From positions 232,328 through 296,327 of IMG/VR virus record IMGVR_UViG_3300017991_005548: a stretch of DNA of 64,000 nucleotides. One strand, given 5' to 3'. The translations under genes were made by a program, and so were the position numbers. Within the stretch, counting starts at the first letter, position 1; each line of letters begins with the position of its first letter. Under the pieces are notes generated by a model. It had not been told where the DNA came from, made no database searches, and saw nothing but the letters and a program-made list of their open reading frames with translations. Shown piece by piece: positions 3,732 through 55,833 of this stretch.

Positions 3732-3761
3732 ATATTATACATTTTATTGTGGGCCGAAAAC

Positions 3762-19980: not shown

Positions 19981-19994
19981 CTGGGAGAATAATT

Positions 19995-23315: not shown

Positions 23316-23325
23316 AATTTTCTCT

Positions 23326-23961
23326 CTATTTTACGACTGCTGATGAAATCCTCAGTTCATTACCTTTATTATTGATTCTACCCTCTATACTTAGGACTAC
23401 TTCGTCTGTTGGAAGATTTGCTAATGGCGTAAGAGTTACAATAGAAGGAAGATTATTAGTCTTACCTGTAGCTTCGACAATTACATCTCCAGTATCTTCT
23501 CTTACAATCCTAACATCATATGAATCGTTTGATTTAGTCTGCCATGAAACTAACTTAATTACTGTTGGGACTCCAAGCGTATCAATTCCCTCGAATATAA
23601 AACTTGCTATAACACTATAGTTTGTTGAAGTTGTTCTGGTGTAAGGTTTTCTCCCAGATGGAAAAATAACATTAACATCGGACATTTTTTGCTCAGCAAC
23701 AACTGATTGGTTCTTAAATAACTGAATTAAACCAGTTTGAGGCGACTTAAGGGTTATTATAAGTTCGTTCTTTTTATTGCCAGGTGAGGTCATAACACTT
23801 TCTATAAGGTCTTCTCTAGATTTCCCATTAAGAATTACTTTTGCTGTTAGATCTTTGTATCCAAGGTTATGAGTCACTGTTATAACTGATTCAGGTGATA
23901 GAGTTCCTTCCTCTTCATCATATCCAAAGATATGCCTGTATACCAATACATCTTTAGCCAT
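23326..23961 (-). CDS. putative tail-fibre-associated protein
   Basis: ITVTHNLG motif seen in fibre proteins; TAATG-coupled to the upstream gene. Confidence 0.55.
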   Translation of the reverse strand: MAKDVLVYRHIFGYDEEEGTLSPESVITVTHNLGYKDLTAKVILNGKSREDLIESVMTSPGNKKNELIITLKSPQTGLIQLFKNQSVVAEQKMSDVNVIFPSGRKPYTRTTSTNYSVIASFIFEGIDTLGVPTVIKLVSWQTKSNDSYDVRIVREDTGDVIVEATGKTNNLPSIVTLTPLANLPTDEVVLSIEGRINNKGNELRISSAVVK

Positions 23962-26320: not shown

Positions 26321-29300
26321 CTATTGGCTTTCGCTAGAACTTTCGCTAAACATTTCAGATGAAGAGGAAGATGACTCACCTTGAGATGATGTTGATGAGC
26401 TTTCGGAGTATAACTCACTAGAGGTACTTGAGCTTTCGGAGTATAACTCACTAGAGGTACTTGAACTTTCAGAGAATCCTTCAGATGATGTACTTGAACT
26501 ATCGGTACTTTGTGAGTATTGTTCACTAGATGTACTTGAACTATCAGTACTCTCTGTTAATCTACGGAAAGTTCCATCCTCCCAAATTGCGTTTCCTAAA
26601 TCACCATCCCAGACAAAGTTATCTCCATTCTCTAGTATCCATTGTTCGTCATTAATGGATGAAGATGAACTTTCTGAACCAGAGCTTGTGGAGAATGGAC
26701 AACTTTCTTCAACAAATCCAGGGTCGCCAAATCCCCTGCCTTTTGTCCAGACATTACCTTGATTAATTGGATAAATTTGGTTTGGGTCACTATAGAACAT
26801 CCAAAGATTTATGTCATTAGTAACTGTATCGTTAACGGCCCAATAAAAATTACCACCTGATTCTCCATAAAATAGATATAAGTCATTTGTATAACGTTTA
26901 TATATTGGATACCCATTAAATGTTTGTATAGTTTTGTAATACGGCCCATTAACATCTTGAGCAGGGACAGAGCTTGAACTTGATTCTGAAGAAAATTGTT
27001 CACTTGATGTTGAGGAACTCTGAGAAATACTGCTAGATGATTCAGATTTTGATGAATCGCTTACTGAACTTTCAGAAAGTGAGCTTGAACTTTCAGATTG
27101 AGAGCTAGAAGACTCACTAGTAAATCCTCCAGAACTTGTACTACTAGAGTCTTTAGAACTTGAACTACTTTCTCCAACTCCATCAGCAAGGGTTGAAAGT
27201 CTAATGGCAGATAAACCAATTTGGCTTGCTACCGTTAAATCTGTTCCACCTGCCTGACCTTGGAGAGATGTCCTTAACTCAACTTCCTCCCCCGCTGTCA
27301 ATTCAAGGACAGTGTGGGCGTTAAAACCACCATTCCAAGTGTCTGCTCCCCCCTGAGAACCACGTTTGTAATTACCATGACCCCCAATATTACTTTCGAC
27401 ATCATCAACAAACCAATCCGCGCCAAATGTAAGTCTTGTCCCACTAGTTGAAACTGTATCATCTGACAATCCATTCCCCATAAACAAATAATCATCAGTA
27501 ATATTAACTTGAACTTCAGCATTAGAGTTTTGAGTATAGGAGTTTGTGTCAATTTGATCAACATCTCTAGCAATATTAAGAATGGTACTTGCTCCCACAT
27601 CCTGTCCACCAGTACTATCATGAGTAATAATGGTTTCTGTATGCCATGGTACTTCCATAATTTCCAGACTAGATGAGTTAACAACTCTGGCCATACCTGT
27701 TCCATCAATGTCTGCGTTACCTCTTTGGATTTGCAAGATAAGATCTTGATTTGCAGTTGTATTATCGACTAGAAAAAGCGCATGAGCCACACCTGGACCT
27801 GAACTATTACCTCTTTCATAGACATATGAATAACTACCCTCAATTGCTGTACCACCCAAAGTTGTCCTTAATATTCTTTGTGTTCTACTAGATCCAGGTC
27901 CAAACTTGAAAGAATATTTGACAAGATATTTTGCGACCTTTTTAAGTCGAACGGTTGTTGCATTTTGTTGTTCGATAACATCTGTGTCAGTTTCGTCTTT
28001 AGTATTAAATGTAATGTCCTGCCATACTGTTCCAACGTAAGCTGTAGTATCTATATCGTCAAAGTATTGTCCATATGCGACTTTGTCTTCACTTGGCAAT
28101 TTTACCAACATTAATGAAGTTTTAGAGTTCGATAACACATCAGATGCACTTATAAGTACGGGTTGCCATTCAACTCGGACATCTTGTCCTCTAACTACAT
28201 CTATAAAAACCGCTCCAGATGTAAAGCCTTCATCATTCTCATTATTTCTGGCATAGCCATATCCATAACCACCATCTTGAACTACACCATTAACCAAAAC
28301 TCTTGATTGAATTGAATGTCTGCCATCAGATGTTGATGTTGATCTAATCTCATACATGAGTAGGTATTTACCATTGCTATCTATAGTGATGTCTGTATTG
28401 TTTACGTTTTTGTTATAAATGCTGTCTTCTCTAACAGTGTTATTAAATTGAACTCCTTCCCATACCCCAATGTTTCCTATTGTTTGGGTATTATTTGTGT
28501 CTTGGTAAATTGCAATAAGTCCAGTATTTTCTACATCAGACTCACTACTGGAACTTGTGATTCCCTCACTACTGGAACTATTGGAACTGTCAGAACTAAA
28601 TTCATCGTTAAGCCATTTATCAGCGAGATATGCTTCTACTTCATATCTCTCTGATGTAGACAGAACCCTATCATAGAGAAGTATTTCAGCGACTAAACCT
28701 TCAGTATATGAATCATTATTTCTGTTTCTTCCAACAGCATAAAAATCAAACAACGGATTGAAAACGGAACCAAGAGTTTGATCTAAGGTTTTCAATCCAT
28801 TTATATAACCTTTTAAACTATTGGCACCATCAGCAGTAATTGATAAAACGGTTGGCAATCTATTCCCAGAAGATTGCTCAATGGAATATTCTGTAGCTCC
28901 TACTCTAATTCCTAAAGTATCTGATGCATTATAATTGACTTGAAAGGAAGTGTCTGGAGTTTCTGAAGAATCATTACAAAACCAACTATCAAATTCAGAT
29001 TGAGTTTCTGTTGATTTATAAACCAAGAAAAAAGTCATTGGGCCTTGCCAATTAACGATATCTCTGTCTAAATAATCGTTATCACCATCAAACTCAACAG
29101 TGTTCCTTCCATTCATTGAGTTCAAGTTGTAAACTGGTTGATTTGCAGGGGTTGTCTGCTCCACATTAAGTATATTACCAGATTTGTCAGCCCAAGCAGA
29201 TACATTACTTCCGTTCAAGGTAATAGTGGATGCATCATCTGCATCTAGCCATAACCTCAATCCATTGGACGGGAGTCCTTCTGATGATGTTGAGCTACTA

Positions 29301-29404
29301 TCTCTGCTTGAACTGGAGCTACTATCTCTACTGGAAGAGCTAGAACTACTGTCTCTGCTTGAGCTTGAGCTACTATCAAAACTACTTGAACTACTTGAAG
29401 CCAT
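26321..29404 (-). CDS. serine-rich fibre-like protein: Ser tract, LamG/ConA-like domain, three C1q/TNF-like domains, small G.Y...NG.P.Y module
   Basis: LRLWLDADDASTI...VSAWADKSG...FDGDNDYL; triple jelly-roll repeats; Ser tracts at both ends. Confidence 0.75.
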   Translation of the reverse strand: MASSSSSSFDSSSSSSRDSSSSSSSRDSSSSSSRDSSSTSSEGLPSNGLRLWLDADDASTITLNGSNVSAWADKSGNILNVEQTTPANQPVYNLNSMNGRNTVEFDGDNDYLDRDIVNWQGPMTFFLVYKSTETQSEFDSWFCNDSSETPDTSFQVNYNASDTLGIRVGATEYSIEQSSGNRLPTVLSITADGANSLKGYINGLKTLDQTLGSVFNPLFDFYAVGRNRNNDSYTEGLVAEILLYDRVLSTSERYEVEAYLADKWLNDEFSSDSSNSSSSEGITSSSSESDVENTGLIAIYQDTNNTQTIGNIGVWEGVQFNNTVREDSIYNKNVNNTDITIDSNGKYLLMYEIRSTSTSDGRHSIQSRVLVNGVVQDGGYGYGYARNNENDEGFTSGAVFIDVVRGQDVRVEWQPVLISASDVLSNSKTSLMLVKLPSEDKVAYGQYFDDIDTTAYVGTVWQDITFNTKDETDTDVIEQQNATTVRLKKVAKYLVKYSFKFGPGSSRTQRILRTTLGGTAIEGSYSYVYERGNSSGPGVAHALFLVDNTTANQDLILQIQRGNADIDGTGMARVVNSSSLEIMEVPWHTETIITHDSTGGQDVGASTILNIARDVDQIDTNSYTQNSNAEVQVNITDDYLFMGNGLSDDTVSTSGTRLTFGADWFVDDVESNIGGHGNYKRGSQGGADTWNGGFNAHTVLELTAGEEVELRTSLQGQAGGTDLTVASQIGLSAIRLSTLADGVGESSSSSKDSSSTSSGGFTSESSSSQSESSSSLSESSVSDSSKSESSSSISQSSSTSSEQFSSESSSSSVPAQDVNGPYYKTIQTFNGYPIYKRYTNDLYLFYGESGGNFYWAVNDTVTNDINLWMFYSDPNQIYPINQGNVWTKGRGFGDPGFVEESCPFSTSSGSESSSSSINDEQWILENGDNFVWDGDLGNAIWEDGTFRRLTESTDSSSTSSEQYSQSTDSSSTSSEGFSESSSTSSELYSESSSTSSELYSESSSTSSQGESSSSSSEMFSESSSESQ

Positions 29405-29463
29405 TAAATGTTTCCATTACTATTTTTCGTATTCTATATTATAAATTTTTTTCTATTAATCCC

Positions 29464-32400
29464 TTATCCAAAACCAAATAAACAGTATTGATCTGGGAAT
29501 GCCTCTGATGAACTTGAACTTTCGGAGAATCCTTCGCTTGAACTTGAACTTGAACTTTCGGAGAATCCTTCGCTTGAACTTGAACTTTCTGAAGAAGAGC
29601 TTTCTGAAGAAGAGCTTTCAGAGAAACCCTCTGATGAACTGCTACTTGAATCTTTAGAACTACTTGATGACGAAATATCAGCTTCAAAACAAGTTGCCAT
29701 TGCTGACAAACTGATATTAGTACCAGTAACAGTAGTTCCTGTTTCAGTGTACCACCTACCTTTAATGGTATAGGTTCCTGCTGGTAATTTATTTTCTGTT
29801 CTTACAAAAATTGAGCAACTTCCATCTTCATTAGCTGTTCCATGACTTCTTCTAATCTCACCATAATCAGTTCCATCAATGTTGATCGTGAAAAGAACAT
29901 CTCTATTTGCAACATCTGCTGATGTCTGTAATGTCATGCATGCAAAAATGTGGCCCTCTTGATTTAACTGTAGGGTTATGGAAGATCCATCTATATCCTC
30001 TATGGAAGTTGCAGTTGTTGTATCAGAATTAACTATTGTCTGGGATGATGGAAGAAACTCTTCTTGATTTGTTTCGCATCCGAAGGCCGTAAGCATAAAT
30101 GGAGCACCAGTGGCAGTAACTGGAGATTCAACACTCCACCTTCCTTTAACTGTTATGTCTCCAGGACCAAAGTTACTTCCAGTTCTTGAAGCTATACATA
30201 TAGAAGATCTGTCTCCTGCACTTGAATGGAACCTGGTAATAGGCAACTCTTGACCACCAATGTTCAGGGCGCAAGTAATGTCTTTGGCGGCTCCACCAGA
30301 AATGTATGTGGTTGCAGATAGGAAACCAAAAATTGGATGGTTCGTCTGCATGGTCAAGTCTTGAGTTAAGCCATCAATATCCTCTAGTGTTGCAGATGTT
30401 GTTGTGTCATTTGCAACTGTATCATATATTGATGGGATTTCATTTCCATAACAACTCTGCATAGGAATGGCGATAACAGTGATGCTAGTTGCAGATAGAG
30501 TTCCTCCTTCAGTATACCATCTACCTTTAACTGTGTATGTCCCTGCTGGAAGAGTGCTTGGAGTTCTATAAACAACACCAACACTACCATAATCATTTGA
30601 ACTTGACTGGTATCTAGTAATCACAGGAGAATCTGTTCCATTGATGCTAATGGCGAAATAACCTTCTTGGTTATTAGTTGTATTGTTGCTTGATAACGAC
30701 ATGAATCCCATTATGTGGGCATCGTCAACCAATATAACGTCAACGCTTGCTCCATCGATATCCTCAAGAGCGGTTGTATTGGTTGTGGAGTCAGATGCAA
30801 CAACTGCTCTTTCAACAAACATGCAATTAAGACATTCCAAGCTTGAAGAGCTACTTGATGAACTGCTAAATCCTTCACTACTTGAGCTTGAAGGAGAAGA
30901 TTCAGAAATACTTGACGATGACTCAGACAGAGATGAAGACGATTCGGACTGAGAACTCTCTGAGAAAGAACTCTCAGATTGACTACTGCTGGATTCTGAT
31001 GTACTACTTGAGCTAGATGATTCTGAGCTTATACTTTCAGTAAACTCATCGCAGTGTCTGTACCTAAAATGAACGTTCTCTGTAGAACTACTTGATGAGT
31101 TACTACTTGATGATTCACTCTGCGAACTTGAACTTTCTGAGAATCCTTCGGATGAACTGCTTGAAGGAGAGGATTCCGACTGACTAGATGATGATTCTGA
31201 TTGAGAACTACTAGACTCACTTTGTGATGACGAACTCTCTGACTGAGAAGATTCACTTTGAGAACTAGAACTCTCTGACTGCGAAGAACTGGATTCAGAT
31301 TGAGATGAATCGGACTGACTACTTGAGCTTTCAGACTGACTACTTGAGCTTTCAGATTGAGATGAATCGGACTGACTAGATGAACTTTCAGATTGACTAC
31401 TTTCACTTTGTGAACTGCTTGACTCTGATTGACTACTTTCAGACTGAGATGATTCACTTTGAGATGATTCCGATTGACTACTTATACTTTCGGTAAATAA
31501 ATCGCATAACAAATATTTGTAATGAACGTTTTCTGTTGAACTACTTGATGATTCACTACTTGAGCTTTCACTTTGAGAACTTGAGCTTTCAGAGAACCCT
31601 TCAGATGAACTACTTGAGCTTTCAGAGAACCCTTCAGATGAGCTACTTGAGCTTTCAGAGAACCCTTCAGATGAGCTACTTGACTCAGATTGTGACGACT
31701 CTGATTGCGAAGAAGAACTTTCAGACTGGGAGCTACTAGACTCAGATTTACTACTTTCACTTTGACTGCTACTGGACTCTGACTGACTGCTACTGGACTC
31801 ACTTTGTGACGACTCTGATTGCGAAGAAGAACTTTCAGACTGGGAGCTACTGGACTCACTCTGAGATGATTCACTTTGAGAACTACTCGATTCCGATTTA
31901 GAACTACTGGACACAGACGATTCACTCTGACTGCTACTACTTTCTGACTGAGAACTTGAGCTTTCAGATTTTGAACTACTGGATTCTGATTGTGAACTAC
32001 TGGATTCACTTTGAGATGATTCACTCTTAGAACTGCTGGACTCTGATACAGAACTTTCGGAAATCGAACTACTAGATTCAGACTGAGAGCTTTCACTCTG
32101 AGATGATGAACTTTCACTTTCTGATGAGGAGCTTTCTGATTGAGAGCTACTGGACTCAGATTGCGAACTTTCTGATTGAGAGCTACTGGACTCACTTTGA
32201 GATGACTCACTTTTACTACTGCTTGATTCGGATTGAGAAGATTCACTCTTTGAGCTACTGGATTCTGACACAGAACTTTCAGAAATCGAACTGCTAGATT
32301 CTGACTGAGAACTCTCACTCTGCGATGAAGAACTTTCTGACTGACTACTTGAACTCTCACTCTGCGATGAAGACGATTCAGATTGAGAACTCTCACTTTG

Positions 32401-38400: not shown

Positions 38401-41400
38401 ACTTGAAGAACTAACTGGGCATTCTCCCCCTTCTATGTTTGGAGCAGGAGCAGTCCCAGTAAGAGTCTCCCATGACAAAGTGTCAGGATCTACCCAAGGA
38501 GAAGTTATAGAAGTTCGATAGTCTTGTATTTCTGGAGATCTTTGTCCCAAACCCCAACGACTATCATTCGTGAAATACAACTCTTTACCATTTGCATTGA
38601 CAAAGTATGTTGTATCATTATGTACTCCTGCTGGATAATACGATCCATCATACGTTGGATCACCTGCAAATTCAGCACAATATGCCGATTGGATATCTAT
38701 ACTTGATACACTCGAACTTGAATCTATAGATGAACTACTTGAACTGAATTGTTCAGATGAACTGCTAGATGATGAGCTTTCCCCTTTGCTTGAACTACTT
38801 GATTCACTTTGAGAACTTGAACTTTCTGATTGAGATGATTCAGACTGCGAAGAACTGGATTCTGATTGAGATGATTCACTTTGACTACTGCTGGATTCAC
38901 TTTGAGAACTCTCAGACTGCGAAGAACTGGATTCTGATTGAGATGATTCAGACTGAGATGACTCTGATTTTGAAGAACTTGATTCCGATTGAGATGATTC
39001 AGACTGTGAAGAACTACTTTCCGACTGTGAAGAACTACTTTCTGACTGTGAAGATTCACTTTGGCTACTTGAACTCTCTGACTGTGAAGATTCACTTTGA
39101 GAAGAAGATGATTCCGATACAGATGATTCTGATTGAGATGAACTACTCTCTGATACAGATGATTCTGATTGAGATGAACTGGATTCAGATTGAGAACTTT
39201 CACTTTTGCTACTAGAGCTTTCAGACTGAGAACTCTCAGATTGAGAAGAGATGGATTGAGATGATTCTGATTGAGAGCTTGAGCTTTCAGAGAATTTTTC
39301 AGACGAACTTGACTCAGATTTTCCTCCACTTGATTCCGAACTTGATTCTGAACTAAATTTCTCAGAGCTACTGGACTCACTTTGAGATGAACTTGATTCG
39401 GATTGACTACTGCTGGATTCACTCTGAGAGCTTGACGATTCTGATTGAGAACTGCTTGATTCAGACTGAGATGATTCTGATTGAGATGAACTTGATTCTG
39501 ATTCAGATGAAGAACTCTCAGATTGTGATGAGCTACTCTCAGATTGACTACTTTCTGACTGAGATGATTCACTTTGAGAAGAACTCGATTCAGATTGACT
39601 ACTACTTGATTCAGATTGAGAACTTGAGCTTTCAGATTGGCTACTCTCAGATTGACTACTGCTTGATTCGGATTGAGACGACTCACTTTGTGAACTGCTC
39701 GACTCAGATCGTGATGAAGAAGACTCGGATTGGCTACTAGAGCTTTCAGACTGAGATGACTCACTCTGACTAGAGGATGATTCTGATTGAGACGAGGAAC
39801 TCTCTGACTGAGAGCTTTCGCTTTGGCTACTGCTTGATTCTGATTGCGATGAGCTACTCTCCGACTGAGAGCTTGAACTTTCTGATTGCGATGACTCGCT
39901 CTGAGACGAACTCGATTCAGATTGACTACTACTTGATTCTGATACAGATGATTCGCTTTGAGAGCTACTGGATTCAGACTGACTACTTGAACTTTCTGAT
40001 TGAGATGAACTTGACTCGGACTGTGAAGACTCGCTCTGAGAACTACTGGATTCTGATTGCGATGAGGAACTCTCAGAGAATCCCTCTGATGAACTTGAAC
40101 TTTCTGATTGTGAAGAGCTACTTTCACTTTGAGAACTTGAACTCTCTGAGAAACCTCCAGATGAACTAGACTCAGATTGTCCTCCACTAGATGAAGAACT
40201 CGAACTTTCTGAAACCCCTTCAGAAGATGAACTCGAACTCAATGAAAATCTTTCTGATGAACTTGAACTCGATGAAAATCTTTCTGATGAACTTGATTCA
40301 GATTTGGAACTCGATGATTCAGACTGACTACTAGAAGAGATGCCTAAGCTCGAAGATGACTCACTTGAAGAAGAAACGCATGGCCCCTTACAAACAGGCA
40401 AGATGTCTCCACTGGTAATAATGCCTGTCATGTCATTGTCCATGGTGATAAAGACATTCAACCCAGCAATTAACTTAATGAATCCCTGTTCTGGACCGCT
40501 ACTGGTTAACAGACATACAGTTTCCCCTTCTACCCAATCATCAATATGACCTGAGACAAACACAAGATCTTTTAGACCAATAACAAGAATCTCAGTAGTT
40601 TCACAACCATCTAAGCTTGAAGAGCTACTTTCCCCTAAGGAACTCTCTGATGATAATGAGAACCCTTGACTCGATGAACTATAGCGTTGAGAACTTTCTG
40701 AACTAGTTGAGCTTGAAGAGTTGCATGGACCCTTACAAACCTTAATGGTATCACCAACATTGACAATACCCATCATCGATTGTTCCATTCTCAAATAAAC
40801 AGCAGGATCAATTAAAAGATTAACTTTACCCTGATATTCTTGACCCCCAATCTCAAGACATATTAATTCATTAAGCACCCATTCATCAAAATAGTTCGAG
40901 ACAAAAACGATATCAGTTCCACCAACTACTTGAGCAACATTCTCTTCGCAAGAACCCATGCTTGATGAGCTACTCGATGAACTGCTAGTGAAACCTAATG
41001 AAGATGATGATTGAGATGATTGGCTAGACTCACTTGAAGATAAACTACTTGATGAATATCCTTCACTTGAAGAAGAACTGCTCGATGAGTATTTCTCAGA
41101 TGAGCTAGAACTCTCCGAATAACCAAGACTTGAAGAAGAACTACTTGAAGAGTATCTTTCAGATGAACTACTTTCTGAGTATCCTTCTGATGAGCTTGAT
41201 GAGCTTGATGAATCTAATGAACTGCTCGAAGAACTGTAACCTTCTGAAGAAGAACTGCTCGAAGAACTGTAAAGTTTATCAAAGTATGGAGTTTCAAGAA
41301 TGTAAATCGTATCACTCTGATTTACGGCGATACCACCAACTCCGCACCAATCATCTGCTCTAGGATAATCTCTGACCAAAGCTGTGTTACCATCTTGGTC

Positions 41401-42294: not shown

Positions 42295-42366
42295 AAAAGT
42301 ATTTTCTTGTTATGTTTGTCAGTACAATGTTATTCAAATAAAGTGTCGTCAAACCCTATGGTAAAA

Positions 42367-43203
42367 TCAACTTGATGAGCTTGAAGAGTCAGTTGATTCA
42401 GATGAACTTGAAAAAGAACTGGAACTATCTATGGAACTAGACGAACTTTCTGAAGATATACTAGACATAGATGTACTTGTACTGGCTAACTCAAATTTAT
42501 TTATTCTTTCCACATCATTGCCTCCAACCATGAACGCAAATTCATGAATAGCAACATCTGAAGTAAACTCACCAGCTAACTCCATAAGTATTTTTACTTT
42601 ATCAGCATATACGGATATGTCGGTTAGAGTTTCAATCTGATTGGGTTCAATCCTTTGATAATCCAACGGATCAAGAGAATCATCTCCTGCAACAGAGAAT
42701 CTAACAATTGTATCTTCGCTGATGTCTCCATTGAAGGTTAATAGGATTGTTTCAGGTTTAAAACCTAAGTCAAATGCTTTTGTGTAAAACTTTGTGGAGG
42801 CATTTGATGTTATGTATCTAAGATTTATATTGCGAACTTTGGGGATATAGGTAGTGTCGGTTGTCATTACAGCCATAAACTGTAGATACCTACCATTTTG
42901 CATCCCCAACTCAAAAGTGCTGTTATAGTATGGCCCAAACCATTTTTCGTTTGTAAGGGCTTTATTCGCTGATCTGACAAAGAAGCCAACATTCAGTTCA
43001 TTCTGATCCCCTTCCCATGTTGCGTCAAGCCATCTTACAAATCCATCATCTGCAATAATATTGTCAGAAATAAAAACGCCTGTAAGCCTATCTATTGGCT
43101 GGATGGCTGTAGGTTTAACGCCTAAGTAATTGAAAGCAACACTGTTGATTCCTGGTATGTTCGCTTGTACAACGTTTGCATTGTTAATATTGATCAGAGC
43201 CAT
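42367..43203 (-). CDS. virion structural protein with C-terminal Ser tract
   Basis: W...TW...FFVRS...WFGPY...GRYLQF...P.V.NI.LRY beta-sandwich pattern of tail/baseplate proteins. Confidence 0.6.
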   Translation of the reverse strand: MALININNANVVQANIPGINSVAFNYLGVKPTAIQPIDRLTGVFISDNIIADDGFVRWLDATWEGDQNELNVGFFVRSANKALTNEKWFGPYYNSTFELGMQNGRYLQFMAVMTTDTTYIPKVRNINLRYITSNASTKFYTKAFDLGFKPETILLTFNGDISEDTIVRFSVAGDDSLDPLDYQRIEPNQIETLTDISVYADKVKILMELAGEFTSDVAIHEFAFMVGGNDVERINKFELASTSTSMSSISSESSSSSIDSSSSFSSSSESTDSSSSSS

Positions 43204-43663
43204 GTTCGTCCTCTTTATTTTCTAGAACAAAGTCGGAAAACTCTTCCTTCCAAGGCCCATAATAACCATGTTGTACTGCTAGTCTTTTGGCATCCCGAAC
43301 GGTATACCTATGAATATTTTCTTCTTTAAAGGTAATTTCTGGTTTTCCACTTTGAAATGAATCAGCCGTTGGCATATTCACTAATCCACCTAATAAATAA
43401 TAATCCCATTTCTTATATGTTTCTTGATTTCTTGAAGTGTCAATTACAGTATCGCCATCTTCAACCCATGCATGGCCAAACTGAACACCTGCCAAAGGCC
43501 CCATTAATGGTCGGATTATTGCATGAACCAATATCAGATCATCTCTCCCTTTCATTACACCTTCTTCGAAAATGTAATTAAACGCTTGGGTAAAGCAGTC
43601 GCCACCTTTATTTTCTTCAGGGATGTGGTCGTACTTTTCTTGGGATTCTTTGTACCAATTCAT
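43184..43663 (-). CDS. papain/transglutaminase-like Cys-His protein
   Basis: GDCF...GHAWVE...VID...YYGPW; begins MNWYKESQ. Confidence 0.7.
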   Translation of the reverse strand: MNWYKESQEKYDHIPEENKGGDCFTQAFNYIFEEGVMKGRDDLILVHAIIRPLMGPLAGVQFGHAWVEDGDTVIDTSRNQETYKKWDYYLLGGLVNMPTADSFQSGKPEITFKEENIHRYTVRDAKRLAVQHGYYGPWKEEFSDFVLENKEDEHGSDQY

Positions 43664-43666
43664 TAT

Positions 43667-44029
43667 TTATTCTAGGGTTAGTAAATATTTCAGGATATTG
43701 AGTTCTTTTACCATCTCATCACGAATTGCAAGAAGATCTACATCTTCTTCTGAGGCAAATTCATTAATTCCATTTGATAAGAAATCAATGTGCTCATTGG
43801 CAAAGCCGTTGACATTATCATCATCAATATTCATGATTTGAGGTTGAGAAACAATTTTAATCCTGCCATTCTTTCCCTGATAAGCTTCTATGAATTCATC
43901 TACATAGTCTTCAAGATTTTCGTAAATCTTCTCGTAAGCTATATGCCTGGCATAACTTTCAGTTTGCCAATGAAGAATCCTTAGTTGACTGAGCATTTCG
44001 GTGAATATACAGATCAGATCTTTTTCCAT
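43667..44029 (-). CDS. DUF5856 / Dps-ferritin-like protein
   Basis: QLRILHWQTESYARHIAY..IYE.L...VDEFIEAYQG.NGRI and LLAIRDEM...N..KYLLTLE. Confidence 0.85.
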   Translation of the reverse strand: MEKDLICIFTEMLSQLRILHWQTESYARHIAYEKIYENLEDYVDEFIEAYQGKNGRIKIVSQPQIMNIDDDNVNGFANEHIDFLSNGINEFASEEDVDLLAIRDEMVKELNILKYLLTLE

Positions 44030-44139
44030 AACAATCTCTCCAAAAAAAACTTGATTCTAGAATTTATTCTAGCTCCAGGTTCGATTCTCCTATAGAACAG
44101 GTTTTTTTAAGCAAAAAAATGAATCATTAGAACAAAAGG

Positions 44140-44586
44140 ATGAGTATGAGAACTCTTTTAACCACATTGTTGCTGTCCTGTGCTCTAACGGGATGTATAA
44201 TAACCCAATATCACGGTTTACATGACATTATAAACAAAAACCTGAGTGTTTATAGCCAACAAGAAAATATTGAGTTCAATAATGTGGCGATCATTCTGAA
44301 ATATTACTCTAATATGATCAATGCTAAAAGATATAATACCATCAAAGAATTAGAGGAAGACACCAAAGAATTTGTCAAAAAGCTTGGAGAAGGGAACATC
44401 TCTGACAATTATCCTGTGAAAGCCTCAAGAGGAGAGGTTATTGTAGTAGATAAATTCCTAAAAGATGTTTTATCTTTTGTTCGGAAAAACGAAATTAATC
44501 CCAGAAGAGTACAGAATTACATCAACCAAGCACTAAAGATTTATGTAACTGAGATTATGAACTATGAAGAGAAAATACCTCAATAA
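44140..44586 (+). CDS. putative lipoprotein
   Basis: Signal peptide with lipobox: MRTLLTTLLLSCALTG-C. Confidence 0.7.
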   Translation: MSMRTLLTTLLLSCALTGCIITQYHGLHDIINKNLSVYSQQENIEFNNVAIILKYYSNMINAKRYNTIKELEEDTKEFVKKLGEGNISDNYPVKASRGEVIVVDKFLKDVLSFVRKNEINPRRVQNYINQALKIYVTEIMNYEEKIPQ

Positions 44587-45544
44587 TTGGATTTCATCAC
44601 TCAGATTCAAATTCTCAAAATTTGGTCTTGAGAAGTATAGCGCCATTGAGTTGGAAGGAGTCAAGTCAAAATACAATTGGCTGATAGAAAATGGAAATTT
44701 CAGGAAGACATCATTTACTGGCGAAGGCGAAAAAGTTGCTGTCTTAGATACAGGAGTTGACCCTGATCACGAAGAAATAAAAGATAGAGTTCATCCAACT
44801 TGCTTTATTGAAGATTGTAACGATCCCATCGGACACTACGATTATTCTAATCATGGAACTTTTATGATTGGTGAAATCATCTCAGAAAATTTCGGAGTTG
44901 CCCCAAAAGCAAAATGCATAAGCATAAAAGTTCTTCATGGTGACGGAAGGGATGGAAACCTACATACATTCGAAAAAAATGTTGTATCAGCAATTCAATT
45001 CGCTTGCTTGAATAAATGTGGTGTAATCTCGATGAGTTTTGGCAGTCCCCATAAAAGTAAGATAGTATACGATGCACTGGAAACGGCGACTGAACTTGGC
45101 ACAATACCTATTGCCGCCGCAGGAAACGAAGGATTGAGGGGATCTCCTTACAAATCATATCCTGCTTCTTTTGAGAATTGCATTTCTGTAGCAAGTGCAA
45201 ATAAACATGGACTCCCCTCATGGTATTCAACCTCTGGAAAAGAAGGGAATCGATTAGAACAGCCAGAAGTTGCTATAGCTAGTCAAAACTACCATCATGG
45301 TATATTGAGTGACAATAAGTATGGAGCAATGACGGGGACAAGCATATCCTGTCCAATCGTGGCTGGTGTTGCTCTGTTATGGCTACAAAAAATGAGAGAA
45401 GAGAATACAATGCCCAAAGGCAAAGATGTCCTAAAAAGTTTCAGAGAATGGCTTAGAATAAATTCTCATGATACTAATCGAAATGGATGGGACAATGAGT
45501 TGGGTTTTGGCGTTCTAAAATTAGACCCTTGGAAATCTTTGTAA
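44564..45544 (+). CDS. subtilisin-like S8 serine protease
   Basis: VAVLDTGVD, HGT, AAAGN oxyanion motif, GTSISCPIVAG. Confidence 0.93.
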   Translation: MKRKYLNNWISSLRFKFSKFGLEKYSAIELEGVKSKYNWLIENGNFRKTSFTGEGEKVAVLDTGVDPDHEEIKDRVHPTCFIEDCNDPIGHYDYSNHGTFMIGEIISENFGVAPKAKCISIKVLHGDGRDGNLHTFEKNVVSAIQFACLNKCGVISMSFGSPHKSKIVYDALETATELGTIPIAAAGNEGLRGSPYKSYPASFENCISVASANKHGLPSWYSTSGKEGNRLEQPEVAIASQNYHHGILSDNKYGAMTGTSISCPIVAGVALLWLQKMREENTMPKGKDVLKSFREWLRINSHDTNRNGWDNELGFGVLKLDPWKSL

Positions 45545-45545
45545 T

Positions 45546-49997: not shown

Positions 49998-50007
49998 GGG
50001 TTAAATT

Positions 50008-53000: not shown

Positions 53001-53439
53001 AACTCCAATAGCCGTTGATGCAATAGGGACAGGATCTGCTTTGTCTGTATTAGAAATAATAAATGGTCGTCCAGCAATTGCATATTCACTCTCTGACGGA
53101 TCGCTGATGTATATAAGAGCGGATGACTCAACAGGATCGGCATGGACAGCAACCCCAATAACTGTTGACTCAGGAGCTTCTATAACTTGGAAATCAATGA
53201 TTGTTGTTAACGGTAATCCTGCTATAGCTTATGTAAGTGGATCATCAGAGTTAATGTATATAAGAGCAGATGACTCAACAGGATCGGCATGGACGGCAAC
53301 TCCAATAACTGTTGATGGAAACAATGCAGGGCAGTATAACTCTATGCAAGTTGTTAATGGGAACCCTGCTATAGCATATAAAGGAAATAGCCAACTTAAA
53401 TATATTAGAGCTAAGGACGCTAATGGAGATTCTTGGTAA
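50008..53439 (+). CDS. 1143-aa protein with Ser tract and C-terminal NGxPAIAY propeller
   Basis: SEGYSES repeats; seven NG/SG.PA[IV] blades. Confidence 0.78.
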   Translation: MSVQNGIGYLRATYNPDLHFTENSDAYANLMYPYIQSDGGNTKNVSLSVDVINSDKNFATKNNYKEQEWSINETNGGNLLLDQVIWGFKEATHNTRDSKALNNAFCFNDQTVTIKITKQGHLQGYIDNDYLYAKNEIELSVVDVVRGKETTLATYKDLESGIDEENRSLQWSIPSKSKGFYLNYGFFGLFVFRIKVTSGYYIDARRNVKSSYQDRITNAYLQLLTFSADQEAVNVQSDSINIFEGNPQPNDSLTDLFDKSIFASLEQYNQNPLSGSQKKAIIADQIAVLFMSQHPVVSSDITPSKIQGFGGEKAIQPQKIIEKAITYAERYDPDVIQLAQNRLFGMLANYKTFSFADEINNLFSSTNQSAQNLVEPTRIIYMDEYGDLSDDMGVDGILFTPYVVENVHTEILSNVPPAEAYEIPLYKYSVGIDTLVVTDLSDENLGCGDTDIKLAFNVIFGDNKIDKIYYQVWLRNNKSYLEYVDKSGTSTDHSFDFSAPGGISCTYSGGSLTLGDIVTARVTIIDIYGFSNVFERKLFIPLNNDRPAITEITSFQRQDGSGLIDVFYHYQGTSEVNAANVSLTYSTNNSSFSSVSTNVIGDIGLGIMPGHRKITWNPTSVLSSSNDVVFVKITLTDVDEYSNAGITESSVVVVDLTTPEVSIRKLSLEEDEDMEESSSLSDSSETSLSSESSESSMGYSTSSSQSDGPSSESSSSSEGYSESSSTSSEGYSESSSTSSEGYSESSSSQSDSSSSSEGYSESSSTSSEGYSESSSSQSESSSSEMYSESSSTSSFMYSESSSSTSGDFEIVDGDSNYISMSVINGRPAIAYVPVSSSNVSYIRSDDVNGESWSDSPLGVGSGDRYPSLLTVSSRPCIAAVVGPSSNQARFSRASNVDGSNWGTPIVNVLIGSNATQFTDLKIISGNPAVVYDSSFLTYVRATNSTGTSWGTPVTISSNTTRGSLNTVSSRPAISFVNYSTQDLMYLRADDSTGSAWTATPIAVDAIGTGSALSVLEIINGRPAIAYSLSDGSLMYIRADDSTGSAWTATPITVDSGASITWKSMIVVNGNPAIAYVSGSSELMYIRADDSTGSAWTATPITVDGNNAGQYNSMQVVNGNPAIAYKGNSQLKYIRAKDANGDSW
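52972..53310 (+). repeat. three in-frame near-identical propeller-blade repeats
   Basis: GATGACTCAACAGGATCGGCATGGAC at 52972, 53122 and 53269 (RADDSTGSAWTATPI). Confidence 0.9.
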
Positions 53440-55833
53440 ATGATCCTAGAGCAAACAAAAATATTAACTAATCGATACCCTCCAGAATATTTTTCTATGG
53501 ATTTAGATAACCGTGGATATCCACATCTTGTTTGGGTAGAGCAAAAGAATGGTCATTTCGATCTCATCTATAAATTCTGGAATGGACTCGACTGGGAATC
53601 TCTAGAAACAGAAGTTATCTATAGATCCGACGAAGACATCTCATATGTGAATTTGGTAATTGCAAGTGGGAAAGTCCTAATCATATTTTTGAAAAAATCT
53701 GATGAAAACTCGGTAATAGGATTTGTAAAAATCGATCAAGTTGTCGAAGAAATTATTGAATACGAAACGGGAGGCTTTGTAAACTGGGTTAGCCTTATAA
53801 CAGATACTACTGAAAAGAAAAGACCTTATGTAATTACTCATGAAGTATATGAATTCAAAGTTTATCAATTAACTGATGAAAATCTGATATTGAAGAGTTT
53901 ACAATCAAAGGTTCTTGACGATTTTGATAACATCAAGGTTTCAAATACAGTTGACAATTTTATTATTGCAATTAATGGTGAAGAAAGTATAGAGTTTAAT
54001 TTCTATGATTACACTTCCAATACTTGGGCCAATTCAAGTTTTATTGAACTTTCTAGTTCAGCAGTTGGTAATGTCGTTGATTTTGATGTTAAGGGGTTGG
54101 CATCATCTAGTAAGGCAGGATTCACGTTTTTAAGAAACGATACCGCAGATCAAATTTATTATGTTGTCTCTGATAGCTCAGGAACTGAAACCACTCTTGG
54201 GACAAACCCAATACACCAAGTCTCAACCAGTCTTACCGCGCCTAATGGTTTCTCAATAGGTGGATTCGTAAATGTAAGTTTATCATATGAAAGCGACTTT
54301 AAACCTAACATATTCGTCCTTGGAACTCAGAACATAAAACTTTCTTATAACGGTGAATGGAATTCTGATATCATAGGAGTCCCAACAAAATCAGAATCAA
54401 CAGTATTTATATTCAACTCATTTAATATTGTGACCGTCTCTAGTGGACAAATATACTTTTTCAATTTGGTTGATGACGCTATCGTTGGAGAGGAAGTCTT
54501 AATTTCTTTACTAAATGCAAAAGAGTTTATTGTCTCAGATTGGAAAAAAGGAGCACTCGTTCCTCAAGAGTTAAGTTTTGTCGATAATTATGACAATGAA
54601 GTTGGGGACATATTGAGGGATGCATTGTCTCCAATACTTGTGACAGCTTCAAATGAACATCCAGGTTATGCATCATCATCATCAACCTCATCAGAAAGTT
54701 CGCCAAGCTCTAGTTCGACATCGTCAACTTCTGATAGCTCACCAAGTTCAACATCATATAGCTCCATAAGTTCATTATCTATTAGTTCACAATCCGTTTC
54801 CGATAGCTCTTCATCTCAATCATTGTCCTCAAGTTCCTCAAGCTCATCAAGTGGAGGTTACTCCGAATCGTCATCATCTAGTGTTGGTTATTCTGAATCA
54901 TCATCATCTAGCATAGGGTTCTCTGAATCATCTAGTTCAATTTCCGAATCTTCAAGTGAAGGGTTCTCTGAATCATCCCCATCAAGCCAAGGAAATTCAG
55001 AATCATCTAGTTCATATTCTGAGTCCTCAAGTGGAGGTTATTCAGAATCGTCATCAACTGGAAATGTTCGTTTTGAATATTTGTTGTGTGACTTATTTAC
55101 GGAAAGTATAAGCTCAGAGTCGTCTAGCTCTGATCCGATGTCAAGTAGCTCTCAATCAATGAGTAGCAAATCTGAATCCAGCAGTTCTCAGAGTGAAAGT
55201 TCTCAATCTGAAAGCTCTCAATCTGAAAGCTCTAGTTCAGAAGCAATACTAGACAGTTCATCATCCTCTTCTTCTTCGTCTGATGGAGGAGTGCCAGCCG
55301 CAATCGAATGTACATTTAATCATGGATGGCCTGGATGTACTCTTACTGACCCAAAAGTTAACATAACACTTACTGGAATTAACTCTGGAAACTCTGATGG
55401 AGGAAGTGGGACTCCACTAGATCCATATTACAAAACATTCTTTGGATGTAATTTTACCAATGGTCAACCCCAAGAAATATGTGGAACATTTGGAAGCAAC
55501 GCAAGTTTAGAATACTGGAGCGTTACTGGTAGTCAAGAAAGATTAAGGTTGGAAGCTTGGGCCGTAAGTAGTCGTCATAGAGTAAATGTATATACCACAT
55601 CTATATGGAATCCGAATGGAATTTTTGAAAAATTCATAAATGGTGGAAATACATTCACTATAAATAACTGGAATGGGGACACCACACCTCCTAATGATGC
55701 TTATGTAACACCTACCAACTGGTCCATTGGTGGAGTTAAAATCTTAGATGAGCAATTTGGCTATGTTGTGAATACTGATGGAATAACCATTAGATGGGAC
55801 CGTGGAGCGAATGGATCTGGTCAAAGTTGGTAA
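53440..55833 (+). CDS. 797-aa protein: N-terminal propeller-like region, Ser tract, Cys-containing C-terminal domain
   Basis: D..GYPHLVW...LIYKFWNG..W blade; [GV]GYSES repeats. Confidence 0.75.
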   Translation: MILEQTKILTNRYPPEYFSMDLDNRGYPHLVWVEQKNGHFDLIYKFWNGLDWESLETEVIYRSDEDISYVNLVIASGKVLIIFLKKSDENSVIGFVKIDQVVEEIIEYETGGFVNWVSLITDTTEKKRPYVITHEVYEFKVYQLTDENLILKSLQSKVLDDFDNIKVSNTVDNFIIAINGEESIEFNFYDYTSNTWANSSFIELSSSAVGNVVDFDVKGLASSSKAGFTFLRNDTADQIYYVVSDSSGTETTLGTNPIHQVSTSLTAPNGFSIGGFVNVSLSYESDFKPNIFVLGTQNIKLSYNGEWNSDIIGVPTKSESTVFIFNSFNIVTVSSGQIYFFNLVDDAIVGEEVLISLLNAKEFIVSDWKKGALVPQELSFVDNYDNEVGDILRDALSPILVTASNEHPGYASSSSTSSESSPSSSSTSSTSDSSPSSTSYSSISSLSISSQSVSDSSSSQSLSSSSSSSSSGGYSESSSSSVGYSESSSSSIGFSESSSSISESSSEGFSESSPSSQGNSESSSSYSESSSGGYSESSSTGNVRFEYLLCDLFTESISSESSSSDPMSSSSQSMSSKSESSSSQSESSQSESSQSESSSSEAILDSSSSSSSSSDGGVPAAIECTFNHGWPGCTLTDPKVNITLTGINSGNSDGGSGTPLDPYYKTFFGCNFTNGQPQEICGTFGSNASLEYWSVTGSQERLRLEAWAVSSRHRVNVYTTSIWNPNGIFEKFINGGNTFTINNWNGDTTPPNDAYVTPTNWSIGGVKILDEQFGYVVNTDGITIRWDRGANGSGQSW

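Follow-up and report, generated by a model that had tools for sequence, protein, structure and literature searches.

Does a module of six large serine-rich genes in an uncultured phage genome encode a system of modified, mucin-like virion fibres? This question was raised by a first-pass annotation of a 64-kb stretch of DNA (hereafter the window, meaning the whole stretch analysed), which is the last 64 kb of a contig from a phage of about 524 kb carrying terminase, prohead protease, RNR and lysozyme genes. The annotation claimed that six genes carry Ser tracts joining adhesin-type domains, that the proteins lack signal peptides and lie beside a beta-helix spike in a terminase-bearing genome, and that they are long virion fibres with glycosylated or phosphorylated tracts. 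We found that the six serine-tract proteins exist as described, whereas the proposed interpretation as a modified fibre system is only partly supported.

All six open reading frames were present at the proposed starts and sum up to 9,004 aa. Serine tracts were defined as 20-aa windows with at least 50% Ser, and by this criterion each protein carries such tracts, in total 20 tracts with 4,104 aa, composed of 64% Ser, 14% Glu and 9% Gln. The other genes of the window have about 4-12% Ser and no tracts, apart from two 8-residue runs in 19953-21140. The tracts are neither due to chance nor to simple-sequence slippage, since all six Ser codons are used in proportions close to the rest of the genome and the DNA repeats (periods of 21, 36 and 57 nt) are degenerate and only 65-95% identical. 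The tracts are confined to this module, with none found in 13 terminase-side loci of relatives (230 kb) or in 14 bacterial LRR loci, while within the module they are kept in relatives down to about 25-35% identity.

The genes form two divergent operons separated by the intergenic region 44030-44139. At the head of the minus-strand operon, a 159-aa ORF and a 120-aa DUF5856 ORF are located at 43184-44029 (-). P3 (42367-43203, minus strand, 278 aa) consists of a conserved 235-aa N-domain followed only by a 43-aa C-terminal Ser tail, and it is not fused to P2, because several stop codons lie in between. P2 (29464-42294, minus strand, 4276 aa) is 52% Ser and starts with an NHL beta-propeller (aa 1-335, window 41290-42294), which was confirmed by Pfam (1e-18). 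It contains two pairs of small paralogous modules (aa 457-520 with 566-634; aa 1207-1288 with 2275-2356), tracts of 121, 45, 572, 986, 1238, 147, 79 and 70 aa built mainly of SESSSSQ / SESSQ units with a net tract charge of -455, and a C-terminal globular domain (aa 3826-4199, window 29698-30819) with a weak MG2 hit. Two assemblies (476 kb and 524,692 bp) break inside the P2 tract, while two others give 4,276 and 4,210 aa and differ only by four in-frame repeat indels; the exact length of P2 is therefore uncertain by tens of residues, but its existence is not in doubt.

P1 (26321-29404, minus strand, 1027 aa) comprises an N-terminal Ser tail (aa 1-49), a LamG-like domain (aa 50-265, window 28610-29257), a Ser tract, a 445-aa region (aa 294-738, window 27191-28525), further Ser tracts, a small Tyr/Trp-rich module (aa 818-950) and a C-terminal Ser tail (aa 951-1027). 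The LamG assignment is only indirect, as it rests on phrog_10356 ('virion structural protein', 1.5e-24 on aa 40-264) and on relatives carrying PF13385. The C1q-like assignment of the 445-aa region is weak, with a BclA_C hit of 24.9 bits (2e-5) below the cut-off of 38, although relative P0022 carries PF18573. Directly downstream of P1 in the same operon, a 768-aa Thr/Ser/Gly-rich protein (23961-26267, minus strand) is possibly a right-handed beta-helix spike, for which support was only sub-threshold (Beta_helix 24.7 vs 25.9 bits; phrog_4577 'tail protein' 2e-6) and INPHARED gave no match. Two unannotated ORFs of 211 and 267 aa (22512-23961, minus strand), without family hits and without homologues in the loci compared, end this operon.

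The plus-strand operon begins with a 148-aa ORF (44140-44586) that has a lipoprotein-type signal sequence and a lipobox (LLSCALTGC) and overlaps the start of a subtilase (peptidase S8) gene. This gene (44564-45544; PF00082, 2.8e-36) has the Asp/His/Ser motifs LDTG, HGT and GTS, shows no signal peptide by visual inspection of the N-terminal sequence, ends 1 nt before P4 begins, and is conserved next to a probable P4 homologue of 376 aa in the relative contig P0009. P4 (45546-49997, 1483 aa) carries a conserved, propeller-like N-domain (aa 1-338), a Ser tract (339-474), a LamG-like region (475-690), Ser, an Asp-box beta-propeller (715-1067), Ser, and an LRR domain (1108-1483) confirmed by Pfam and by the match to internalin-J (PDB 3bz5, 5e-35). 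P5 (50008-53439, 1143 aa) has a conserved 672-aa N-domain (beta domain, low-confidence helical part, two FN3/Ig-like domains), a Ser tract (673-809) and an Asp-box beta-propeller (810-1143), which is paralogous to P4 715-1067. The Asp-box assignment is supported by visible repeats in both proteins. P6 (53440-55833, 797 aa) carries a conserved N-terminal domain predicted by an AF2 model of aa 1-403 to be a beta-propeller (residues up to about 312 modelled confidently), Ser tracts 404-543 and 551-619, and a Cys-containing C-terminal domain (620-797). The last gene of the operon (55882-56721) encodes a UDP-glucose/GDP-mannose dehydrogenase family protein (TIGR03026 149.5 bits, below the cut-off of 189.8), and the claimed UDP-sugar dehydrogenase was confirmed as a family member with a GxGxxG NAD motif and the GGKC catalytic Cys. 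However, it has only 279 aa, lacks the C-terminal UDP-binding domain, and may be inactive. Hydropathy and motif scans confirmed that the six proteins lack signal peptides, TM segments and LPxTG motifs.

Comparison with relatives revealed a common architecture, in which conserved N-terminal domains (NHL and other beta-propellers, FN3 pairs) are followed by a Ser tract and then by exchangeable distal domains (Asp-box propeller, LamG-like, C1q/BclA-like, LRR). For P5, 20 homologues with 35-73% identity all have a tract after residue ~670, followed by FG-GAP/PKD, LamG, phosphatase-like or other domains. The same holds for P2, whose orthologues at 65-67% identity have the same layout, and for P4 and P6. 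Besides the P4/P5 paralogy, domain shuffling was evident from the P1 LamG-like domain found at the C-terminus of the P5 homologue in relative L020, from the split of the P4 N-domain into two genes in relative L037, from Ser-flanked inserts in a loop of the P6 propeller in relatives, and from short same-frame DNA microhomologies between tracts of different genes. In four places the tracts are simply terminal tails (P1 both ends, P2 and P3 C-termini), and such tails were also seen in the complete P0017.

The search for modifying enzymes, which had been suggested as a check of the glycosylation idea, gave a new finding. In 26 of 30 assessable related loci, a glycosyltransferase gene sits between the P5 and P6 homologues, and its best solved relatives are all polypeptide GalNAc-transferases (E about 1e-25), the enzyme class that starts mucin-type O-glycosylation. 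The top 15 PDB hits all belong to this class (3e-25 to 8e-16) and span the whole catalytic domain including the DxH motif and the Gal/GalNAc-T motif; after one unnamed 'Glycosyl transferase' entry (8uhv, 1.8e-13, same span), other named classes reach only 1e-8 over the first ~90 residues. Some relatives additionally carry sulfotransferase-like and GT25 genes in the module. The glycosylation idea gains real but indirect support from these relatives. However, this phage and its 60-72% relative lack the ppGalNAc-T-like enzyme at the syntenic site. None was found in about 105 kb of sequence examined, and pattern scans of the IMG/VR contigs returned no hit on the two contigs of this phage. Genes for CysD/CysN are located 4-7 kb past the window end.

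These results support that the locus is phage and not cellular, that the proteins are modular, adhesin/lectin-like and without secretion signals, and that the Ser tracts are a selected, clade-conserved feature. What the analysis shows directly is the conservation of the N-terminal domains across relatives, the position of the Ser tract, which always follows the N-terminal domain, and the variation of the distal domains from phage to phage with shuffling among paralogues. Virion location, ligand binding and tract modification, in contrast, are inferred. In the explanation we favour, with moderate confidence, the proteins are displayed on the virion as flexible appendages, as without a secretion signal a virion or cell lysis is the only way out of the cell. 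In most of the clade the tracts are probably O-glycosylated by the module's own ppGalNAc-T-like transferase, with sulfation in some members. In this phage, the tracts would then be either unmodified, being more acidic (14% Glu against 4% in GT-bearing relatives), or modified by enzymes not found here, and the short UDP-sugar dehydrogenase and CysD/CysN hint at acidic or sulfated sugar chemistry.

Support for a virion location rests only on architecture and weak similarities, namely phrog_10356 and phrog_17517 and the FN3 pair with phage minor-tail/baseplate look-alikes; tightly packed same-strand operons in relatives are a further hint. No protein of the module has a significant match to a structurally or proteomically defined tail-fibre, baseplate or capsid-decoration protein. 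PHROG hits cover only generic binding domains, Foldseek hits are generic FN3 and propeller folds with TM 0.1-0.5, and INPHARED has no homologues of the P5 N-domain or the beta-helix protein. Classical fibres are rigid trimers and nothing here predicts a shaft; the 'stiff stalk' of the first-pass annotation is an assumption. With regard to glycosylation, the tracts persist in this phage and its relative without the transferase at the syntenic site, and glycosylation by that enzyme is therefore not required for keeping them. Furthermore, more distant members of the transferase family mostly lack Ser/Thr-tract neighbours (3 of 25 loci have them), and the enzyme may have other substrates. The tracts also have almost no Pro or Thr, unlike mucin domains.

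The alternative that survives best, although tentative, is that the tracts are plain polyserine linkers, i.e. unmodified, disordered, hydrophilic spacers giving reach and independence to the binding domains. Such linkers are an established device in Saccharophagus, Teredinibacter and Cellvibrio enzymes (PMC2386152). In line with this, no transferase, sulfotransferase or kinase was found in the window or in about 40 kb of flanks (about 420 kb of this genome was covered only by two motif scans), the tracts are retained in the clade lacking the transferase, and the higher Glu content could provide solubility and extension without glycans. On the other hand, tracts of 572-1,238 aa are 10-50 times longer than known linkers, the terminal tails link nothing, and most of the clade keeps a protein-O-glycosyltransferase-like gene inside the module.

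It is less likely that the proteins are not virion parts, but act inside the infected cell, for example as low-complexity scaffolds for a condensate or replication compartment, or are released at lysis as free adhesins or decoys, possibly trimmed by the adjacent S8 protease. The lack of homology to known virion proteins beyond generic domains would fit this view, as would the S/E/Q-rich tracts with periodic aromatic residues (EGY/EGF), which resemble phase-separating low-complexity regions, the co-operonic S8 protease and lipoprotein genes, and a weak tubulin-like gene in the window suggesting elaborate intracellular organisation. However, LRR, LamG, Asp-box propeller, FN3, PKD and C1q-like modules and a ppGalNAc-T-like enzyme in relatives are hallmarks of extracellular surface proteins, a conserved N-end with a variable distal end is the classic receptor-binding-protein pattern, and a possible beta-helix spike shares the operon.

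Hyper-phosphorylation of the acidic tracts, as in phosvitin or dentin phosphophoryn, giving a polyanionic, cation-binding coat, is improbable. The P2 tracts contain 474 S-x-x-[E/D] sites and are strongly acidic, but no protein kinase domain was found in the window, its flanks or any related module examined, and the relatives instead carry glycosylation and sulfation genes. Mis-assembled or non-coding repeat DNA can practically be dismissed, since, although two assemblies break inside P2 and other frames of the repeat are also open, a single frame runs 12.8 kb from the Pfam-supported NHL domain to a C-terminal globular domain, two independent assemblies span it and are identical outside the four in-frame indels, Ser codon usage is mixed, and orthologues and more than 100 tracts occur in relatives from many samples.

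The module is unusual, and no description of it was found in the literature searched, but the claim that no characterised phage system resembles it needs tempering. Glycosylation of capsid and tail-tube subunits by phage-encoded enzymes is reported for mycobacteriophages (Freeman et al. 2023, as cited in PMC12619734); there, short C-terminal sites are modified, while here the candidates are kilodalton- to hundred-kilodalton-scale Ser tracts in accessory adhesin-like proteins of a megaphage, without experimental demonstration. Polyserine linkers are well known in Cellvibrionaceae enzymes; those of Saccharophagus degradans, Teredinibacter turnerae and Cellvibrio japonicus carbohydrate-active enzymes (PMC2386152; Howard et al. 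2004, cited there) likewise separate independently folded catalytic or binding modules and take the place of the Pro/Thr linkers of other bacteria, but they are tens of residues long (e.g. PSL(58), PSL(25)) and sit in secreted enzymes with signal peptides or lipoboxes, whereas the phage tracts reach 1,238 aa, contain regular Glu/Gln and occasional EG[YF] units, also occur as tails, and sit in proteins without signal peptides. In the serine-rich repeat glycoproteins of Gram-positive cocci (Fap1, GspB, SraP, PsrP), very large O-glycosylated Ser repeats flank a ligand-binding region and form a stalk projecting the adhesin. Membership in this group fails on every defining feature, as there is no aSec-type signal peptide, no LPxTG anchor and no SecA2/SecY2/GtfA/GtfB genes; furthermore, the repeat units differ, each protein has many binding domains, and the genes are phage-encoded. 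Compared with the polypeptide GalNAc-transferases (CAZy GT27; PDB 2d7i, 1xhb, 2ffu and others), the putative transferases of the related phages have Ser-rich, low-complexity proteins as neighbours, but have only about 310 aa and no ricin-type lectin domain, and identity appeared low on inspection of the alignment; donor and acceptor are inferred by analogy alone. With modular phage receptor-binding proteins and Ig/FN3-decorated virion proteins (tail fibres, T4 Hoc-like decoration), the module shares the conserved N-terminal part with exchangeable distal binding domains, FN3, LamG, LRR and beta-helix modules, and clustered paralogous families, but no trimeric shaft, coiled coil or intramolecular chaperone was detected, the connection is made by disordered poly-Ser instead of a rigid fibre, and there is no detectable homology to known fibre or baseplate proteins.

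In the favoured view, a conserved end would hold each protein in place, the hydrophilic tract would act as a long tether or brush, and the distal domains would bind glycans or surface proteins of the host or of particles. The tract-coding DNA would also serve as a seam at which domains are gained, lost, split or swapped. Although the animal-mucin-type glycosyltransferase kept in most related phages is missing from its usual place in this one, the six proteins may be phage-made mucin-like surface proteins.

In the DNA stretch analyzed, six ORFs carrying long serine tracts were found, as claimed in the first-pass annotation, whose observation was thereby confirmed. These were P1 (26321-29404, minus strand, 1027 aa), P2 (29464-42294, minus strand, 4276 aa), P3 (42367-43203, minus strand, 278 aa), P4 (45546-49997, plus strand, 1483 aa), P5 (50008-53439, plus strand, 1143 aa), and P6 (53440-55833, plus strand, 797 aa). 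A tract was defined as any stretch covered by 20-residue windows with at least 50% Ser. With this definition, the six proteins hold 20 tracts totalling 4,104 residues and composed of 64% Ser, 14% Glu, 9% Gln, 1.2% Thr, and 0.5% Pro. P2 alone is 52% Ser, and its tracts of 572, 986, and 1,238 residues are built mostly of SESSSSQ and SESSQ units and carry a net charge of -455. None of the other 28 large ORFs of the window has a tract, while one of them has two 8-residue Ser runs. All six Ser codons are used in the tracts in about the same proportions as elsewhere in the genome, and the underlying DNA repeats (periods 21, 36, 57 nt and multiples) are only 65-95% identical. Therefore, the composition is maintained at the protein level and is not a by-product of one slipping codon. 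Also, a short non-Ser motif (YLLCDLFTESISSESSS, with variant HCDEFTESISS) is shared between tracts of P2 (aa ~3590-3605 and ~3747-3760) and P6 (aa ~545-560) at both the protein and the DNA level, and Cys-containing motifs (CKGPC, GECPV) mark the borders between small modules and tracts in P2 and its orthologues. A fusion of P3 into P2 by stop-codon read-through was considered as both share a frame, but was rejected because five stop codons lie between them.

To place the window, the terminase large subunit (7770-9635) was compared with IMG/VR and found to be 100% identical to genes on two contigs of 296 kb and 476 kb. The coordinates show that the window is the last 64 kb of the 296-kb contig. 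The same phage occurs as contigs of 523,871 bp (ENA) and 524,692 bp (JGI), i.e. it is an uncultured phage of about 524 kb; complete genomes are found under JGI Ga0180433_10000003 (524,692 bp), ENA ERZ27256796 k141_941235, and NCBI JBINOA010003471.1 (508,676 bp). The nearest terminase in 50,697 deposited phage genomes is only 25% identical and belongs to a 485-kb uncultured phage. Context genes include a ribonucleotide reductase, a phage lysozyme, a ClpP-type prohead protease, a VWA protein, a trypsin-like protease, and an ABC-type ATPase. The ribonucleotide reductase (11845-15348, minus strand) has 1,167 aa, and a segment around residues 343-413 hits unrelated PHROGs (head protein, helicase), which could be due to an intein or an inserted element. 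The trypsin-like serine protease (4590-5651, minus strand; Trypsin_2, 4e-23) is conserved in seven related phages and is a second protease in the window besides an S8 subtilase and the ClpP-type prohead protease. A 455-aa protein (10409-11776, minus strand) with a weak Tubulin_3 hit (17.4 bits, below cut-off) is conserved in 10 terminase-related phage contigs and could be a PhuZ-like phage tubulin. A cellular locus, which the first-pass annotation had named as a finding that would refute its reading, was rejected in view of the terminase, the prohead protease, the 524-kb viral contigs, and conserved synteny with 13 phage contigs. For host inference, the LRR domain of P4 was searched, but this yielded only ~30% hits scattered over Bacteroidota and Clostridia, the window contains no tRNAs, and no host call resulted.

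The 476-kb IMG/VR contig ends and the 524,692-bp JGI contig starts inside the P2 tract, at about window positions 31,450-31,570. Two other assemblies cross the tract and give 4,276 and 4,210 residues, being identical apart from four in-frame repeat indels of 57, 21, 84, and 36 nt. P2 is therefore real, but its exact length is soft. A selection analysis from SNPs between two assemblies was impossible, because the sequences are identical outside the indels. The Ser-tract repeats explain why assemblies of these genomes break at this locus, and many homologues in databases are truncated at their tracts for the same reason.

For the domain content, sequence searches and structure predictions were combined. 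P2 begins with an NHL beta-propeller (Pfam 1e-18) and also contains two pairs of small paralogous modules. P4 ends in an LRR domain closest to internalin-J (5e-35). P4 715-1067 and P5 810-1143 are paralogous, internally repeated Asp-box (SxDxGxxW) propellers. An AlphaFold model of P6 1-403 built on 18 homologues (pLDDT 70, pTM 0.71) is a generic beta-propeller, and its best solved look-alikes in a Foldseek search are fucose lectins and sialidases (TM 0.4-0.5). A moderate model of P5 1-672 (pLDDT 65) shows a beta domain, a poorly predicted helical part, and two FN3/Ig-like domains, with only generic FN3 hits. P1 50-265 matches a PHROG annotated as 'virion structural protein' (phrog_10356, LamG-like; 1.5e-24), and its relatives carry Laminin_G_3, whereas the C1q/BclA-like call is only sub-threshold. 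The domain list of the first-pass annotation was therefore mostly right, with LamG and C1q-like as the weakest items. No glycoside hydrolase family was detected. In none of the six proteins were a signal peptide, a transmembrane segment, or an LPxTG motif found by hydropathy and motif scans, in agreement with the claimed lack of signal peptides; the most hydrophobic 12-residue stretch (Kyte-Doolittle mean) in the first ~40 residues scores at most 1.06 in all six.

The architecture is conserved among related phages, while the distal parts are not. A search with P5 1-672 found 20 homologues at 35-73% identity, each of them with a Ser tract starting at about residue 670. After the tract, either the contig ends, as assemblies break there, or a different domain follows, namely FG-GAP/PKD, LamG-like, an alkaline-phosphatase-like domain, or small Tyr-rich modules. 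Orthologues of P2 at 65-67% identity repeat the NHL-tract-module-tract layout; the search of all representatives with the P2 NHL domain was, however, swamped by 100,000 cellular NHL proteins and recovered only three true orthologues. Longer contigs of relatives (L017, L020, L021, L037, and L039) carry same-strand, tightly packed operons with five to ten Ser-tract proteins and hold recognizable homologues of the N-domains of P3, P4, P5, and P6. Domains move between proteins: The P1 LamG-like domain sits at the end of the P5 homologue in L020, the P4 N-domain is split in L037 into two genes, each followed by its own tract, and Ser-flanked inserts occur inside a loop of the P6 propeller in L020 and L039. 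Tracts of different genes share short same-frame DNA microhomologies of 24-45 nt. In contrast, tracts are absent from the terminase-side flanks of 13 related phages and from 14 bacterial LRR loci. Several tracts are terminal, i.e. at both ends of P1 and at the C-termini of P2 and P3, and in one relative a complete P5 homologue ends in a Ser tail. The tract is therefore more than a linker.

In L020 and in the contig of another relative (P0017), a GT2-family gene follows the P5 homologue. It belongs to a large, almost entirely metagenomic family of proteins of about 310 aa. A profile of 12 members was searched against all PDB sequences, and the top 15 hits are all polypeptide N-acetylgalactosaminyltransferases (3e-25 to 8e-16). 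The alignment covers the whole catalytic domain including the DxH metal site and the WG..E..S.K.W..GG...GH.FR Gal/GalNAc-T motif. One unnamed 'Glycosyl transferase' entry (8uhv, 1.8e-13) follows over the same span, while other named glycosyltransferase classes reach only 1e-8 and match just the first ~90 residues. A census with a P6 N-domain profile in metagenome contigs returned 38 related loci, and in 26 of the 30 loci with at least ~650 nt of upstream sequence the ppGalNAc-T-like gene lies directly upstream of the P6 homologue. Where enough sequence exists, it lies downstream of the P5 homologue. Some of these loci are the same phage seen in different samples, so the number of independent cases is lower. 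The link is not universal, as among 25 more distant members of the enzyme family in IMG/VR only 3 have a Ser/Thr-tract neighbor within 6 kb. The pairing extends beyond megaphages, since a much smaller phage contig (L040/L044 15118-18279; IMGVR_UViG_3300027847_002504, 115 kb) with a 38%-identical ppGalNAc-T-like gene also has a 1,053-aa protein with five Ser tracts 4 kb downstream.

Further genes were found in the modules of some relatives. L039 also has a carbohydrate-type sulfotransferase and a GT25 gene in the operon. In another type of locus (L101 31-1116 and L100 88-762), a sulfotransferase-like gene with a PRSGTS loop sits directly upstream of the P6 homologue, where other relatives have the ppGalNAc-T-like gene, although this rests on sub-threshold Pfam hits (Sulfotransfer_3 at 1e-5). 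In several relatives (L085 3192-4220; L076 2622-4412; P0017 contig), proteins made of repeated DUF4379 treble-clef zinc fingers are inserted next to the glycosyltransferase at varying positions, which may represent a mobile or selfish element.

The phage studied here is an exception, as P5 and P6 abut (53439/53440). In the relative L110, in which P5 is 72% and P6 60% identical to the proteins of this window, the two genes are likewise adjacent with nothing between them. The transferase profile found nothing in the window or in the three flanking loci L002, L108, and L109, about 105 kb in total. Two motif scans of IMG/VR did not hit the contigs of this phage, which together with the flanking loci cover the genome; in total, four IMG/VR scans for the transferase or for sulfotransferases were negative. 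As about 420 kb was covered only by motif scans, which can miss a divergent copy, absence of the enzyme is likely but not proven. The tracts of this phage and its near relatives are richer in Glu (10-14%) than those of transferase-bearing relatives (4.4% Glu, 4.0% Asp, 4.7% Thr).

What this phage does have is a 279-aa UDP-glucose/GDP-mannose dehydrogenase family gene right after P6. Its NAD motif and catalytic Cys are present and the N-terminal and central Pfam domains pass their cut-offs, but the C-terminal domain (PF03720) of the three-domain UDP-glucose 6-dehydrogenases (NAD-binding, central, and UDP-binding) is missing and all NCBIfam scores are below cut-off, so that it is a family relative of uncertain activity. 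Also, CysD and CysN (sulfate adenylyltransferase subunits; 396 and 455 bits, above subfamily cut-offs) are encoded 4-7 kb beyond the window end (L108 2684-5088, equivalent to about 68.2-70.6 kb, i.e. 4-6.6 kb beyond it), with a PAP2 phosphatase about 7 kb further on. Together with the sulfotransferase-like genes in the modules of relatives, this hints at sulfation chemistry. The P4-P5-P6 operon is headed by an S8 subtilase with an intact-looking triad and a small 148-aa ORF (44140-44586, plus strand) with a lipoprotein signal and lipobox (LLSCALTGC), which overlaps the start of the subtilase gene. A small ORF plus S8 pair recurs in a relative contig, and a spanin-like role, exclusion, or a function as protease partner may be considered for the small ORF.

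For a link to known virion proteins, only domain-level hits were obtained: phrog_10356 in P1, phrog_17517 in a relative, and the FN3 pairs, with TM-scores of 0.1-0.2 for P5 1-672. A tblastn search with P5 1-672 and with the neighboring possible beta-helix protein against 50,697 phage genomes (INPHARED) gave no match, and PHROG scans of module proteins from relatives were almost all blank. Neither the P5 nor the P6 model links the proteins to a known virion part, and no sign of a trimeric shaft was seen. On the other hand, a conserved N-terminal part with a variable distal part across related phages, as in phage receptor-binding and fiber proteins, was found.

In comparison with known systems, the module works like serine-rich repeat adhesins and like polyserine-linked multidomain enzymes, but is a member of neither. 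With serine-rich repeat glycoproteins (SRRP) of the Fap1/GspB type it shares Ser-rich regions flanking folded binding domains, but the repeat units (SESSSSQ, SSSSSEGYSE) differ from SRRP dipeptide repeats. The long N-terminal signal peptide for accessory Sec export (KxYKxGKxW-type) and the C-terminal LPxTG anchor are lacking in all six proteins, and Pfam, PHROG, and precomputed annotations of the window and about 40 kb of flanks show no linked secA2/secY2/asp or gtfA/gtfB genes; SRRP membership was therefore rejected. With polyserine-linker proteins it shares poly-Ser segments separating independently folded modules. Those proteins are secreted carbohydrate-active enzymes with signal peptide or lipobox and linkers of tens of residues, whereas here secretion signals are lacking, the tracts are 10- to 50-fold longer (up to 1,238 aa), and terminal tails occur. 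Judged by sequence, the relatives share the initiating-enzyme class with animal mucin-type glycosylation, although the presumed acceptor, with 64% Ser but 1.2% Thr and 0.5% Pro in the phage studied here, has almost no Pro or Thr. Phage-encoded glycosylation of virion proteins is already reported for mycobacteriophages (Freeman et al. 2023, cited in PMC12619734). The principle is thus not new, but the scale and the substrate type are. Full-text searches found no description of serine-tract proteins in jumbo or huge phages or of ppGalNAc-T-like genes in phage structural modules.

The sequence data establish a phage module of modular binding-domain proteins whose Ser tracts are selected, clade-conserved, and specific to the module, with conserved N-domains and exchangeable distal domains, and with a ppGalNAc-T-like gene as a near-constant member of the module in the wider clade, but not here. 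It is by inference only that we regard the proteins as exposed on the virion, the tracts as long hydrophilic tethers or brushes and as recombination seams, and the tracts as O-glycosylated, and sometimes sulfated, where the enzymes are present. As a scale estimate from simple geometry and not from data, the 3,258 tract residues of P2 would span about a micrometer if fully extended and tens of nanometers as a random coil. We hold the modular, virion-displayed adhesin reading with moderate confidence, about as likely as not. Against a place on the virion, there is no significant similarity to any defined fiber, baseplate, or decoration protein and no sign of a trimeric shaft, and only generic fold matches were obtained. 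The interpretation of the first-pass annotation as modified, mucin- or SRRP-like virion fibers was thus supported in part, the glycosylation idea being strengthened for the clade and weakened for this phage.

Among the alternatives, bare polyserine linkers in this particular phage remain possible, but are less likely. Roles outside the virion are considered unlikely, and phosphorylation of the tracts very unlikely. An assembly artefact was rejected, given the mixed Ser codon usage and two assemblies that cross the P2 tract and are identical outside four in-frame indels.

A more far-reaching reading, which we regard as tentative and less likely than not, is that a clade of roughly half-megabase sediment phages builds mucin- or proteoglycan-like appendages. 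Poly-Ser tracts up to more than 1,000 residues long would be O-glycosylated, and in some members sulfated, by phage-encoded enzymes including a compact homologue of animal polypeptide GalNAc-transferases. Thereby, flexible glyco-tethers, which for P2 could approach a micrometer if extended, would display swappable lectin and adhesin domains on the virion. This would be the first mucin-type protein glycosylation system described in a bacterial virus and a new kind of phage appendage built on disordered glycopolymer rather than a rigid trimeric fiber. The phage studied here would be a derived member that lost the initiating enzyme and compensated with more acidic tracts or with other sugar or sulfate chemistry (UDP-sugar dehydrogenase, CysD/CysN).

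The ppGalNAc-T-like enzyme embedded in the module of most relatives makes it a concrete question whether bacterial viruses perform mucin-type O-glycosylation of their own proteins, which is directly testable with a 310-aa enzyme and a simple repeat peptide. The tracts also look like seams for domain shuffling, which bears on how host range evolves in megaphages. If these are virion-displayed proteins, they would show that very large phages can extend their reach with long, disordered, possibly glycosylated tethers carrying interchangeable lectin and adhesin heads, a different design from the rigid trimeric fibers that dominate phage biology.
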